Shown: positions 14,025-43,499, counted from the stretch's first letter. The stretch: 64,000 nt of DNA from Octopus sinensis (GCF_006345805.1 NC_043005.1:12772001-12836000), one strand, 5' to 3'. Notes: a model not told the origin generated them from the sequence alone. A program made the numbers and translations.

Positions 14025-14300
14025 CATATATATATATATACATATATATATATATATATATAATATATATATATATATATATATATATACATATATATAT
14101 ATACATATATATATATATATATTATATATATATATATATATATAATATATATATACATATATATATATACATATTATATATACATATATATATATATATA
14201 TATATATATATATATATATATATAATATATATATATATGTATACATATATACATACATACATACATATATATATATATATAATACATATATATATATATT
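14025..14300. repeat. (TA)n microsatellite
   Basis: Direct reading. Confidence 0.95.
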
Positions 14301-14447
14301 GTTGTATTTAGGAATGGTCATTTTGCCAGTTTAGCCAATAAAAACACACGCACTATATATTTGGTGTTACTTTGCTTCAGTGTTATTTATTTTTTACATT
14401 AATCTTGGCTAAACTGGCAAAATGACCATTCCTAAATACAACAATAT
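14296..14447. repeat. Inverted repeat, perfect 43-bp arms, 66-nt spacer
   Basis: ATATTGTTGTATTTAGGAATGGTCATTTTGCCAGTTTAGCCAA at 14296-14338 and its reverse complement at 14405-14447. Confidence 0.95.
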
Positions 14448-15303
14448 CTGTTTCAACACACGACTTCACATAAAAAATCTTGCACAACAAATATTTAAAC
14501 GTATATATATATATATATATATATATATATATATATATATATATATATACACAAGAACATACTCTCGGGTACATCTGTATGCGAATGTGACCGTGTGTGC
14601 GTCTGTGTTCACGAGGGACATTTTACATATAGGTATGTTGAATGAAAACATCTTTAGCTATTTAGTCCCAGTTACCTCTCTTAAGGCTAAGATGGACTTC
14701 GCGCTTTGATACATGGAGCTCGACAAAATATGTGCCAACCGACGTACAAAACTCGTCGCTACAAATTGCGCTAAATGCTGTAAATCAGTTGCGCTAATAT
14801 GGCCGCCGAAACCAATAAAAGAGTATACTGCAAATTTGCTACTACAGTCATTTCTATGTCACACCGTCAATATAATGATAAAGGTACACTAATGATATAA
14901 TGTAATGATAACGGTACATCACTAATGATATAAAGTATAACTTCTCTAAAGTAAGATGAATGAGGTAACGTATTTAATTAACAATCAAAGTGAGGTTTCG
15001 CGGTCTATTTCACACTATCGATCATAGTTCTTAAAGATGCTATCGTCTGTCAACGATACAAACTATTGATCACTTGTAATGAAGTCATGATAAAAAAAAA
15101 AAAAACAGATGAATACGTGTCAAGTGCTCATGCTAAAGTTTCACTAACTGCATCATGTTGGTCTAATACCGTTTCGTAGAAGAGCTTAGTAATTCATTCA
15201 TAGTTCATTTTATTTCTCAAAGTGAACAAATAATCGAAGTAGGGTACCTTGCCGACGTCCGCTATAGGTGTATATTTTGTATAATATTCATATATATGCA
15301 AAG

Positions 15304-15885
15304 TGCGACGAGCTGGCAGAAACGTTAGCACGCCGGGCGAAATGCGTAGCGGTATTTGGTCTGCCGTTACGTTCTGAGTTCAAATTGCGCCGAGGTCGAC
15401 TTTGCCTTTCATCCTTTCGGTGTCGATTAAATAAGTACCAGTTACGCACTGGGGTCGATGTAATCGACTTAATTCGTTTCTCTGTCCTTGTTTGTCCTCT
15501 CTGTGTGTAGCCCCTTGTGAGTAGTAAAGAAATAGGTATTTCGTCTGCCGTTACGTTCTGAATTCAAATTCCGCCGAGGTCGACTTTGCCTTTCATTCTT
15601 TCGGGGTCGATAAATTAAGAACCAGTTACGCACTGGGGTCGATGTAATCGACTTAATCCGTTTGTCTGTCCTTGTTTGTCCCTTTGTGTTTAGCCCCTTG
15701 TGGGTAGTAAAGAAATAGGTATTTCGTCTGTCTTTACGTTCTGAATTCAAATTCTGCCATGGTCATCTTTGCCTTTTATCCTTTCGGGGTCGATAAATTA
15801 AGTACCAGTTACACACTGGGTTCGATCTAATCGATTGGTCCCCTCCCCAAAAATTTGGGGTCTTGTGCCAAGAGTAGAAAATAAT
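15304..15885 (+). mobile_element. SINE family C trimer
   Basis: One full unit then two head-truncated units starting GGTATTTCGTCTG at 15535 and 15718; the last unit has the alternative tail. Confidence 0.9.
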
Positions 15886-15899
15886 TTTTATATTTAATT

Positions 15900-16116
15900 A
15901 GGGTGGCGAGCTGGCAGAATCGCTAGTACGCTGAAGGAAATGCGTAGCGGAATTTCTACTGTCGCTACGTTTTGAGTTCAAATTCCGCCGAGTTCGACTT
16001 TGCCTTTCATCCTTTCGGGGTCTGTAAAATAAGTACCAGTGAAACACTGGGGTCGTGTAATCGACTTGTCCCCTCCCCCAAAATTTCAGATCTTGTGCCT
16101 AGAGTAGAAAGGATTG
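15900..16116 (+). mobile_element. SINE family C monomer, alternative tail
   Basis: 15-bp TSD TTTTTATATTTAATT at 15885 and 16117. Confidence 0.88.
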
Positions 16117-40120: not shown

Positions 40121-40325
40121 ATATAAGTTGTTTTGGGACGAAGAAATGTTGAGTGAATATGTCAAGAACTTTTTTGTCGCATCCCACCCGACACACACAC
40201 ACATATACATACATATAGCAACACATGCTATATGTATGTATATGTGTGTGTGTGTCGGGTGGGATGCGACAAAAAAGTTCTTGACATATTCACTCAACAT
40301 TTCTTCGTCCCAAAACAACTTATAT
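40121..40325. repeat. Perfect palindrome, 100-bp arms, 5-nt spacer
   Basis: 40121-40220 is the exact reverse complement of 40226-40325 (checked base by base); spacer ACACA. Confidence 0.97.
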
Positions 40326-41489
40326 ATATATATATATATATATATATATATATATATTATATATATATATTATTATATATATATATATATATATATATAT
40401 ATATATATATATATATTATACATATATATATATATACATTGTGTATATGTATATATACATAAACATATTATACATATTACATATATATATGTATGTATGT
40501 ATGCGTGTATGTATACACAAACACACACACACACACACACACACACACACACACACATACACACATATATATACATAGGTTTCGGGGTTATAACCGCTAA
40601 GGCATTTCTTTAACATCAACACTTGTCGTTTTTTTTTTTCAACAGCTTCATGTGTAGGAAAATCTACGGAGACTCGCACGTCTGGGTCATCATGATCATC
40701 GCCGCCACCACCACCTTCATCATCATCATCATCATCATTGCAATCAGATCTCCTTGATAGGGCCACCGGTGTCTCGAAACAACGCTATTTGTATTCTGTG
40801 TTGTACGAAGCCATATCTTTCCAGTCTGAATAGTTTTAAGAAAGAGAGAAAAAAACAGCACGAAAATATTTCCAATAGGACTGTTACTACTACTACTACT
40901 ACTAATACTACTACTACTACTACCACTACTACTACTGTAAATTGGGGTTGATGAACAGATCTTCTGTCGTTGCTGACAACAGAACATGACACTGTATGTT
41001 AATGGTGAGGAAAGACAGTTGGTCAGAGTTATTGCTTGGGGTTGGGCAAAGTGTTGAGTGAATGTATATGTTTAAAGCATATAGGCAAGAGTGTATGAGT
41101 GTATATCCATGTGTGTATATATATCCATGAGTGTATGGTGTTATAAGTGTGTAGTGTTGGGTCTTTGAAGTGTTGTATGAGTATGTACCTGAATGTATGC
41201 GTCTGAGAGCGCAGTGATATATTCTGTAAGCCAGCGTTCCCCAAACAATGGACGAAAACTCGGATCCAGTTTCCAGTAAAAGAAAAATGCAAAATTTTAA
41301 TATAACAATAATTGCCGTGTAAAATATCCAGCAGATGGACGAAATTGCGTTTCGTTATTTCACAAGTTAACTTTAATGCGGAGCGAATGCAATAATACTG
41401 CAGCTACAAATTTGCGGAGCAGTCATGCTCATTAACTGGGTCAAACGGCTCATGTGGTATGTTTATAACGAAGGCAGTAAGCTGGCAGA

Positions 41490-41910
41490 AGGCGGCGAGT
41501 TGGCAGAATCGTTAGGATGCCGGGCGAAATGCTCCGCGGTATTTCGTCTGCCGTTTACGTTCTGAGTTCAAATTCCGCCGAGGTCGACTTTGCCTTTCAT
41601 CCTTTCGAGGTCGATAAATTGAGTACCAGTTACGCACTGGGGTCGATGTAATCGACTTAATACCTATGTCTGTCCTTGTTTGTCCCCTCTGTGTTTAGCC
41701 CCTTGTGGGTAATAAAGAAATAGGTATTTCGTCTGCTGTTACGTTGTGAATTCAAATTCCGCCGAGGTCGACTTTGCCTTTCATCTTTTCGGGGTCGATA
41801 AATTAAGTACCAGTTACGCACTGGGGTCGATGTAATCGACTTAATCCTTTTGTCTGTCCTTGTTTGTCCCTTCTGTGTTTAGCCCCTTGTGGGTAGTAAA
41901 GAAATAGGTA
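41490..41910 (+). mobile_element. SINE family C dimer
   Basis: Second unit starts GGTATTTCGTCTG at 41723. Confidence 0.9.
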
Positions 41911-43256
41911 TGGAGAAGCGTCAGTGATAACATGACTATGAAACACATCGTCACAGGAGCTGAATCTGCAAACACAGAGAACATATTAGGAAATTTAGCT
42001 GAATATTTCCTATTTCTACTAGTGCACACATAGTCATATAATGTGGATGCACCAAGAGTCTTTAAGTCCAAGCATTGCATTCGTCTGGAATCATGTAATT
42101 CAAAGAGGGTCCGTGACTTTCTGCTCTTCCCCTTTTTAGAAGAAAAAACTTACTGTTCCTTCTCTTGAAAAACACGATTCTGAGAAGACAAACTAAACCA
42201 CTGGATGCTGATCGAAAACAGTCTTCCCCGTCTTATTATTTGTTTCCAGAAGCACTGGTGAACCTTTAATTAATTTACTATAAACTAACCATATTATTTA
42301 ATTAATTTACTATAAATTAACCATATTATTAACAAGTTGTTTTTTTATTTATTATTAAATCGAAATTTCGTATTGCATATCTACTATTGAAATAATGAAG
42401 GAAACTTAACAAAATCAGAGATCTTTCAACTTTCCATATCCTACAGCTATTTCGATAATCCTTACGCTGTCTCGCAGTGTAATATTTATCTTGCAATGGA
42501 TAGGAATTAGTTTTGTGATTGAGGCACACACTTGGGAATCTCTTGAAATCCACATTTTGTTAACAAAATATATATTAAAATTGAAATTTTAAAAAATTTT
42601 TCTAGATAACGTTAACTTTAACAATTGCTTTCTTTAAGTAAAAGTTACATAATCCAAACGAAGATCCTTTCTTTTATATTACTGTTAATATAGAGATGTG
42701 AGAATCATATTTTCTAGGATTTTTGAAGTGATCTCCAAATAACAAAAAAACAGAAATAAGCGGAGAGAAGAAAACGACAAAACATTCAGAAAGAAATGGG
42801 AACAAACAAGAAAGATAGTGAAGAAGGAAAGAGATTAAAAAAGAATGAAACGAAAAATACAAAATTGGCACTATAAAAACAACAAATGCTAAAAATATAA
42901 ATAAAACAGGAACATTGATAGGACTACATCAACCAAAAGGACGTAGAAACACTTGTTAGTAATAGATATGAGCTACGCTAGACTGTCACTAAAAGCATGC
43001 AGGCTTTAAATTAATTAATTCTTGTAAGCATCGAGATAACATTTTAGTCCATTGATGTGAGGTTATATACGTCAAGAGATTTAACCAATCGTAAAGACTA
43101 GTCTCCAGCAGTCATAAATGTCCGTGTTCGAAAAATTGGGTCAAAGAAGTCGGGAAAGAATGATAAAGCGACACGTTATTAATCGCAAGGACATCAACGT
43201 ATATGCACAGACGTATATATCTATTTATCTACCTATATATATATATATATATATAT

Positions 43257-43499
43257 ATACTAAGTAATTAAGGGTTTAGCAACGAATTGCCTCACCAACA
43301 CACCGAATTTAGAAATAGCAGTCAAAGAGATATAGCTATTCCTTCTACTAAAAGGGGGATCTCAGTAAAAACACAGCACTTGAACTTTTACTGAGATCCC
43401 CCTTTTAGTAGAAGGAATAGCTATATCTCTTTGACTGCTATTTCTAAATTCGGTGTGTTGGTGAGGCAATTCGTTGCTAAACCCTTAATTACTTAGTAT
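43257..43499. repeat. Perfect palindrome, 114-bp arms, 15-nt spacer
   Basis: 43257-43370 is the exact reverse complement of 43386-43499 (checked base by base); spacer ACACAGCACTTGAAC. Confidence 0.97.

Follow-up and report, generated by a model that had tools for sequence, protein, structure and literature searches.

Within a 64,000-nt stretch of Octopus sinensis DNA (GCF_006345805.1 NC_043005.1:12772001-12836000; hereafter the window, taken from a microsatellite-rich assembly of 2.7 Gb), five inverted repeats lie against tracts of the dinucleotide repeat (TA)n. Four of these (loci 1, 2, 3 and 5) probably each go back to a single event in which a short non-coding retroelement entered an existing (TA)n tract as two opposed partial copies, while the fifth (locus 4) is a separate case and, if real, would be a snap-back scar. 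A preliminary description of the window had reported that the five loci share one layout, and all were found where it had placed them, each having one arm next to a (TA)n tract while the other arm continues onward:

Locus 1: arms 14296-14338 and 14405-14447 (43 nt, 100%), loop of 66 nt; (TA)n 14026-14299 directly against the left arm.
Locus 2: arms ~34881-34933 and 34948-35003 (35-nt ungapped core, 94% complementary), loop of 14 nt; (TA)16 34846-34877 on the left.
Locus 3: arms 35986-36013 and 36081-36108 (28 nt, 96%), loop of 67 nt; (AT)15 35956-35986 on the left.
Locus 4: arms 40121-40220 and 40226-40325 (100 nt, 100%), loop of 5 nt; the right arm enters (TA)n 40321-40502.
Locus 5: arms 43257-43370 and 43386-43499 (114 nt, 100%), loop of 15 nt; (TA)23 43214-43259 on the left.

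The AT-type identity with the tract noted earlier at four outer switch points was likewise observed and amounts to 3-5 nt (AATAT at locus 1, AATT at locus 2, ATATA at locus 4 and ATA at locus 5), with an identity of only 1-2 nt at locus 3. Inverted repeats beside (TA)n are far more frequent than chance predicts. (TA)n tracts of at least 20 bp number 32 in the window and occupy 2.4% of its length, and 20 dinucleotide-preserving shuffles of the window yielded no non-simple inverted repeat of at least 27 nt. Five of the six clean inverted repeats in the window are the loci listed above, and all five lie at most 21 bp from a (TA)n tract. The enrichment relative to other microsatellites that was to be expected from the preliminary description was borne out in 135 kb of flanking DNA from other loci, where an inverted repeat occurred at most 10 bp away from 6 of 42 (TA)n tracts versus 1 of 84 other microsatellites (Fisher p = 0.0055), in a biased, non-random sample composed of flanks, from the same genome, of loci examined in this analysis. 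When these flanks were pooled with the window, the figures were 11 of 74 and 1 of 148, respectively (p = 3e-5).

Searches against the octopus's own genome identified the duplicated DNA at loci 1, 2, 3 and 5 as interspersed repeats of four unrelated families, i.e. a ~400-bp element (F1), a ~215-bp element (F2), a short interspersed nuclear element (SINE) derived from transfer RNA (tRNA), and the 582-bp repeat unit of an element that forms tandem arrays (F5). Locus 4 consists of single-copy DNA, and the duplicated sequences are thus mutually unrelated, as had been proposed. At the four repeat-derived loci, the arms, the loop and the 'longer sequence' following them together constitute family copies, with an inverted partial copy directly adjoining the 5' end of a forward copy; their depiction as inverted copies of neighbouring sequence is consequently apt for locus 4 and not for these retroelement copies. 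The same layout, two head-to-head copies within a (TA)n tract, was found elsewhere in the genome for these families. All four are flanked by (TA)n on both sides, in the window as well as at other sites, indicating an insertion bias. Their outer ends occupy two alternative TA-like 3' end sites, 57-100 nt apart in each family, those of the inverted copies being AATAT, AATT or ATA sites that recur across independent insertions, and the inner joint varies between insertions and carries duplications of 27 to 125 nt. Tandem copies were found neither at the five window loci nor in F1 and F2. Furthermore, the inverted arm at loci 1 and 3 contains family sequence that is missing from the adjoining forward copy and therefore cannot be a local copy of it.

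The most extensive evidence comes from locus 5, which has the following components (tracts here and below were located with Tandem Repeats Finder and by sequence, unless indicated otherwise, and carry no strand):

43214-43259: (TA)23, target flank of locus 5.
43260-43384, minus strand: inverted copy of F5 segment A, outer end at the inner 3' site (...CTTAGTAT).
43386-43599, plus strand: forward F5 copy made up of A (114 nt) plus T (100 nt); its outer 3' site reads ...CTGATA.
43600-43666: (AT)33, second target flank, common to the next SINE.

The non-coding F5 unit of 582 bp is made up of segments A (114 nt), T (100 nt) and R (368 nt) and occurs in head-to-tail arrays, and locus 5 is the smallest version of its two-armed insertion, namely an inverted A followed by A and T. 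Segment mapping on 29 loci, sampled by the tail alone, yielded 16 independent F5 insertions, 13 of which are two-armed (opposed copies or arrays), each with its own inner joint. Of the 25 outer ends that are visible, 22 adjoin TA tracts, and they use a small set of repeatedly occupied positions, where A terminates (...CTTAGTAT), where T terminates (...CTGATA) or slightly beyond (...AACCATAT). Two copies (L009 and L013) display imperfect-TA target duplications of at least 13 bp.

The 340 bp between the TA tracts of locus 5 (43260-43599) recur full-length in the genome at 86-98% identity (2436 first-look candidates), and both arms, with nearly identical outer ends, are present in each of the top 40 full-length matches. 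This uniformity, together with one outer end common to seven F2 hairpin copies, favours inherited palindromes, whereby the hairpin would be a fixed part of an element resembling a miniature inverted-repeat transposable element (MITE) or a fold-back element, copied whole, with its arms kept alike by selection or gene conversion. We nevertheless regard such inheritance as unlikely, as terminal inverted repeats are absent and the right arm is internal, being followed by a tail of 57-100 nt. In an alignment of 28 F5 hairpin copies, which have TA flanks on both sides, the centre is different in nearly all copies and the longer arm can be either of the two, while the outer end extends 8-12 nt further in 5 of the 28, spanning three subfamilies. 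Polymorphisms common to at least two copies were mirrored on both arms in 8 of 8 cases, indels included, in a tally on 27 hairpin copies, which under inheritance would demand repeated double mutations; one-sided changes are mostly singletons. Moreover, the nearest relatives of the 100-nt tail in a tail-only search (97-99% identity) are linear units in 582-bp tandem arrays rather than hairpins. The palindrome is thus not fixed in a MITE consensus with terminal inverted repeats, the arrangement that the preliminary description had named as the contrary case, given that joints and some outer ends vary and such repeats are lacking.

Several further observations concern F5 and its surroundings. Terminal inverted repeats had been considered for F5 and were rejected, the resemblance being merely weak, AT-rich and by eye. 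A run of N, i.e. an assembly gap, directly adjoins an F5 two-armed array (L083:573-608), where such structures seem to break assembly. One F5 copy with identical flanks is shared by the unplaced contig C9999 and chromosome C16 (L058 and L059), which makes it probable that the small contigs are haplotigs. Another family, F6, behaves like those at the four loci, with an 85-nt perfect hairpin beside (TA)n (L071:867-1054) and linear copies elsewhere, one of which lies in the window between two TA tracts (~8470-8590, minus strand).

At locus 1, the following features were distinguished:

14026-14299: (TA)n tract, target flank of locus 1.
14300-14405, minus strand: inverted F1 copy, from the inner 3' site (...ACAACAAT) to ~105 nt upstream (own-genome search, linear copies L018-L021).
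14406-14501, plus strand: forward F1 copy comprising the final ~95 nt, whose outer 3' site adjoins (TA)24.
14502-14549: (TA)24, second target flank (Tandem Repeats Finder).

The 66-nt 'loop' is the continuation of the inverted F1 copy and is lacking from the forward copy. Region 14300-14501 matches the genome as two separable modules, positions 1-108 recurring alone at 94-98% identity. Linear F1 copies measure ~400 bp and end at ...ACAACAAT or ~57 nt beyond it, and the two-armed copies (the window copy, L016, L017 and L022) have differing centres and an identical outer end, ACAAT/AT.

A corresponding arrangement was found for F2 at locus 2:

34846-34877: (TA)16, target flank of locus 2.
34878-34932, minus strand: inverted F2 copy, outer end at the inner 3' site (...GCTGCAATT).
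34933-35064, plus strand: forward F2 copy comprising the final 132 nt; its end, ...CTCCGTAA, adjoins a short TA run (35065-35078).

The outer end of this inverted copy recurs in L024-L028, L030 and L031. A genome search with 34878-35064 returned 1110 first-look candidates; many F2 copies comprise only positions 56-187 (95-98% identity), and fewer span 1-187 (83-90%). The closest relative of the forward part is a linear copy (98%), which likewise argues against an inherited palindrome. The linear element is ~215 bp in length and occupies ordinary AT-rich sites, with a normal target-site duplication readable in L036. Two-armed F2 copies fall into three centre classes (short hairpins, L031 and L034) with outer ends at ...GCTGCAATT or ...CTCCGTAA; all nine of them lie in (TA)n, and a (TA)n 5' flank was present in none of eight linear copies. 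A long autonomous parent of F2 was ruled out based on eight 8-kb upstream stretches, the linear element being only ~215 bp.

Locus 3 involves the SINE and is composed as follows:

35956-35986: (AT)15, target flank of locus 3.
35987-36064, minus strand: inverted SINE head, positions 1-78 of the ~320-bp tRNA-derived SINE (sequence comparison).
36065-36080: (AT)8 filler at the inversion joint (by sequence).
36081-36348, plus strand: forward SINE copy, position 52 to the 3' end, with a 27-nt overlap with the inverted head.
36349-36405: (AT)29, second target flank.

The inverted head is 95-97% identical to the heads of the full SINE copies at 43705-44040 (plus strand) and 51622-51952 (minus strand), and all three SINE copies in the window sit at (TA)n. 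Directly upstream of the copy at 43705, three tandem copies of an 18-bp unit occur (43660-43714), each combining TA-rich filler with the 8 nt that open the SINE head (GAAGGCGC), a pattern suggestive of stuttering where the SINE 5' end was joined.

The palindromes at these four loci were most likely produced during insertion by two-strand priming of a self-complementary target. Each insertion would consist of two head-to-head partial copies with both 3' ends facing outward and abutting the tract, one copy starting at the inner TA-like 3' site and the other at the outer site, for which reason one arm would appear welded to the tract while the other runs into a 'tail'. According to this model, the (TA)n target would be cut on both strands and, because (TA)n is self-complementary, both target 3' ends could anneal to UA-rich sites of the element RNA and prime reverse transcription (twin or dual priming), although for some copies a snap-back of the first complementary DNA (cDNA) may have led to the same product. 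The two cDNAs would be joined at a variable inner point; the RNA template would carry one copy of the arm, and the palindrome would be made anew at each insertion, not inherited. The outward 3' ends, the two TA-like start sites, the variable joints, the mirrored variants and the extra sequence in the inverted arms all fit priming from both strands, while Penelope-like (GIY-YIG) machinery is suggested, circumstantially, by the existence of tandem and inverted arrays, by the preference for (TA)n and by the tail on one side only. The preliminary description had offered two routes, a strand snapping back at (TA)n or a Penelope-type insertion with inverted termini. From the former it may be retained that the palindromes seem to be made anew at (TA)n and re-anchored at TA-like microhomology, but the copied strand is retroelement RNA or cDNA except at locus 4; the latter is the nearest fit for loci 1, 2, 3 and 5, with opposed copies in (TA)n genome-wide, but not for locus 4.

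A number of points weigh against this interpretation. The copies studied were retrieved by similarity to the window copies, and the samples are thus biased. The joints are duplicated by 27-125 nt instead of showing the deletion that classical twin priming predicts, so that two RNA templates, two passes or a snap-back must be assumed. Arm-to-arm gene conversion could explain the mirrored variants, and later deletions at palindrome centres could explain the variable centres. Target-site duplications are unreadable in most copies, their flanks being TA repeats. Four sampled GIY-YIG loci have no sequence in common with F1, F2, F5 or the SINE, and Rfam searches detected no hammerhead in 13500-44500 of the window even at E <= 1, nor in the F5 unit or at 35780-35990 (both at E <= 10). 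Finally, locus 4 is not explained by retroelement insertion. This locus consists of the following features:

40121-40220, plus strand: left arm, continuous with single-copy DNA on its left; genome searches return only the locus itself.
40226-40325, minus strand: right arm, which repeats the left one perfectly in inverted orientation and joins the tract via ATATA.
40321-40502: (TA)n tract of ~94 units (Tandem Repeats Finder).

Own-genome searches showed that 39720-40225 is single-copy, its sole other match being its own right arm, and a second copy of the kind seen for C9999 and C16 does not exist. The turn comprises a 5-nt loop flanked by GCA/TGC, a 3-nt self-priming site. If real, locus 4 was most likely left by snap-back repair of a break within the (TA)n tract or next to it. 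The known counterpart of such snap-back synthesis in repair is synthesis-dependent microhomology-mediated end joining (SD-MMEJ), or the templated insertions of polymerase theta, which are usually 5-30 nt long. Locus 4 resembles these in having an inverted copy next to the joint, the GCA/TGC self-priming site and a 5-nt microhomology at the point of rejoining, but its inverted copy is 100 nt in length. Its identity as a low-copy element or retrocopy was ruled out, as 39720-40225 is single-copy and a second TA flank is lacking on the left.

It is possible that locus 4 is an assembly artefact. As a broader explanation, it was considered that the perfect palindromes at 40121-40325 and 43257-43499 were both made by the assembler or by chimeric reads at (TA)n. 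Their arms are 100% identical and their loops tiny, a form that is unstable in cells, the F5 array at L083 adjoins a run of N, and assemblies are known to have difficulty with complex structures of the Penelope type (Craig et al. 2021, PMC8557442). This explanation appears quite unlikely, since the locus 5 type is represented by dozens of copies in the sample, among which divergence is graded and subfamily variants are mirrored, features not to be expected of an artefact, and since the arms are diverged or the loops long at loci 1 and 2; at locus 4, the sole counterpoint is its likeness to the other loci. Single-copy palindromes such as locus 4 therefore require read support before further use. 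Least probable, to a degree that we find it hard to entertain, is an in-situ DNA fold-back at all five loci, in which a nascent strand at a stalled fork or break would copy neighbouring DNA and re-anchor in (TA)n: it would agree with the AT-type microhomology at four outer switch points, with the duplication of single-copy DNA at locus 4 and with the self-complementary, cruciform-prone nature of (TA)n, but it is contradicted by the family sequence found in the inverted arm and not in the forward copy at loci 1 and 3, by the recurrence, within each family, of the two-armed layout and its outer sites at numerous genomic positions unrelated to one another, and by the presence in F5 of whole opposed arrays rather than short local copies.

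The preliminary description had placed hammerhead-like remnants beside several of these loci, which was not confirmed by the Rfam results given above. The only related feature near the loci in a motif scan is the following, which is not significant in Rfam:

35878-35920, plus strand: hammerhead-core-like string (CTGATGAG, a good stem, CGAAAC).

The Rfam searches returned only generic hairpin microRNA models, below their thresholds. By eye, segment R of F5 (L072:437-804) contains GAAAC-GTAC-GTC, which resembles the 3' half of a minimal hammerhead, and ~85 nt upstream of it CCGATGAG, in which C replaces the conserved U. Two short tandem arrays in the window (15351-15834 and 41538-41911, 2.0-2.6 copies) are built from the same 183/184-bp unit, which is also present in L019. 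These arrays have no Rfam match and are possibly the 'hammerhead-like remnants' that were meant.

The genome is rich in GIY-YIG matches, with at least 5029 first-look candidates, and many of them lie in open frames of 600-883 aa, including one frame of 781 aa that recurs; such long recurrent frames suggest the presence of young Penelope-like elements. Among the four GIY-YIG fragments sampled, two (L092 and L094) lie between (TA)n tracts and a third is preceded by one, and the sole family match near them, located upstream of L093, is a weak one (75%) to F6. The window contains a single reverse transcriptase, encoded by an open reading frame at 9389-10600 (minus strand), which is L1-like (Pfam RVT_1, E = 3e-31), with L1 ORF2p as its nearest solved relative. 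It belongs to a 5'-truncated long interspersed nuclear element (LINE) with an A-rich tail at 8705-11355 (minus strand), between (TA)n at 8589-8704 and 11356-11400, so that TA tracts serve as landing sites for LINEs as well. At 33787-34231 there is an (ATC)n microsatellite of ~445 bp, which is imperfect.

As regards the significance of these findings, a perfect palindrome next to (TA)n in this genome should in most cases be annotated as a retroelement insertion, not as a host fold-back or a regulatory hairpin. It is a tentative and rather doubtful proposition that octopus (TA)n tracts are systematic palindrome factories, in which priming by both cut strands of the self-complementary target would let a guild of unrelated non-coding retroelements insert as opposed copies and generate thousands of fresh perfect hairpins, with the same nicking and snap-back chemistry occasionally folding back host DNA, as at locus 4. 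If true, they would constitute a large renewable source of long double-stranded RNA and cruciform DNA. The octopus lineage is known for heavy RNA editing. The families described here leave unusually readable footprints, in the form of two TA-like 3' sites, outward 3' ends, variable joints and co-varying arms, which argue for two-strand priming and account for the one-sided 'tail', and which present a testable model rather than a new kind of system.

Among known systems, MITEs and fold-back elements resemble the octopus repeats in being short, non-coding, hairpin-forming and located beside TA. However, the latter lack terminal inverted repeats, their inner joints vary, and their readable target duplications are at least 13 bp in length, in contrast to the 2-bp TA of MITEs. 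Animal retrozymes of the non-long-terminal-repeat (non-LTR) type are hammerhead-bearing tandem repeats tied to Penelope-like elements (bioRxiv 10.64898/2026.07.22.740005). Their tandem units are non-coding, each with a type I hammerhead, and give rise to circular RNA. F5 is comparable in having a non-coding unit of ~580 bp in head-to-tail arrays, but this unit is devoid of a hammerhead detectable by Rfam.

Twin priming of L1 was reportedly put forward by Ostertag and Kazazian in 2001. Both twin and dual priming have been discussed for this element (Meyer et al. 2010, PMC2837659). The similarities with the octopus families include two inverted fragments of one element within one target site and microhomology at top-strand internal priming, the octopus outer ends being at TA-like sites; additionally, the geometry of locus 3 is classical, with an inverted 5' part followed by a forward 3' part. 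In contrast to L1, the octopus joints are duplicated by 27-125 nt and not deleted, giving rise to true palindromes, the target is a self-complementary microsatellite instead of TTTT/A, a poly(A) tail is absent, and the pattern is frequent rather than occasional. The joint duplications fit dual priming or snap-back better than classical twin priming.

Penelope-like elements possess a strong (TA)n bias, with an integration mechanism that, like that of their non-coding riders, has been called undefined, a tail at one end only, and an inverted 5'-truncated copy at the 5' end which creates inverted repeats, and they also form partial tandems (PMC8557442). The octopus families share with those of the Neptune/Naiad type the (TA)n bias, the inverted partial copy upstream of the forward one, the one-sided tail and the hard-to-read duplications. 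Tandem arrays of the 582-bp F5 unit are present elsewhere in the genome. They differ in being short and non-coding, in having no canonical hammerhead among the sequences searched, in having no reverse transcriptase/GIY-YIG partner tied to them by sequence, and in the length of their one-sided tail (57-100 nt versus 30-40 bp in Penelope-like elements). Two-armed insertion of the Penelope-like or retrozyme type is already known, and the octopus families match this layout, with circumstantial evidence for their placement among the Penelope-like elements.

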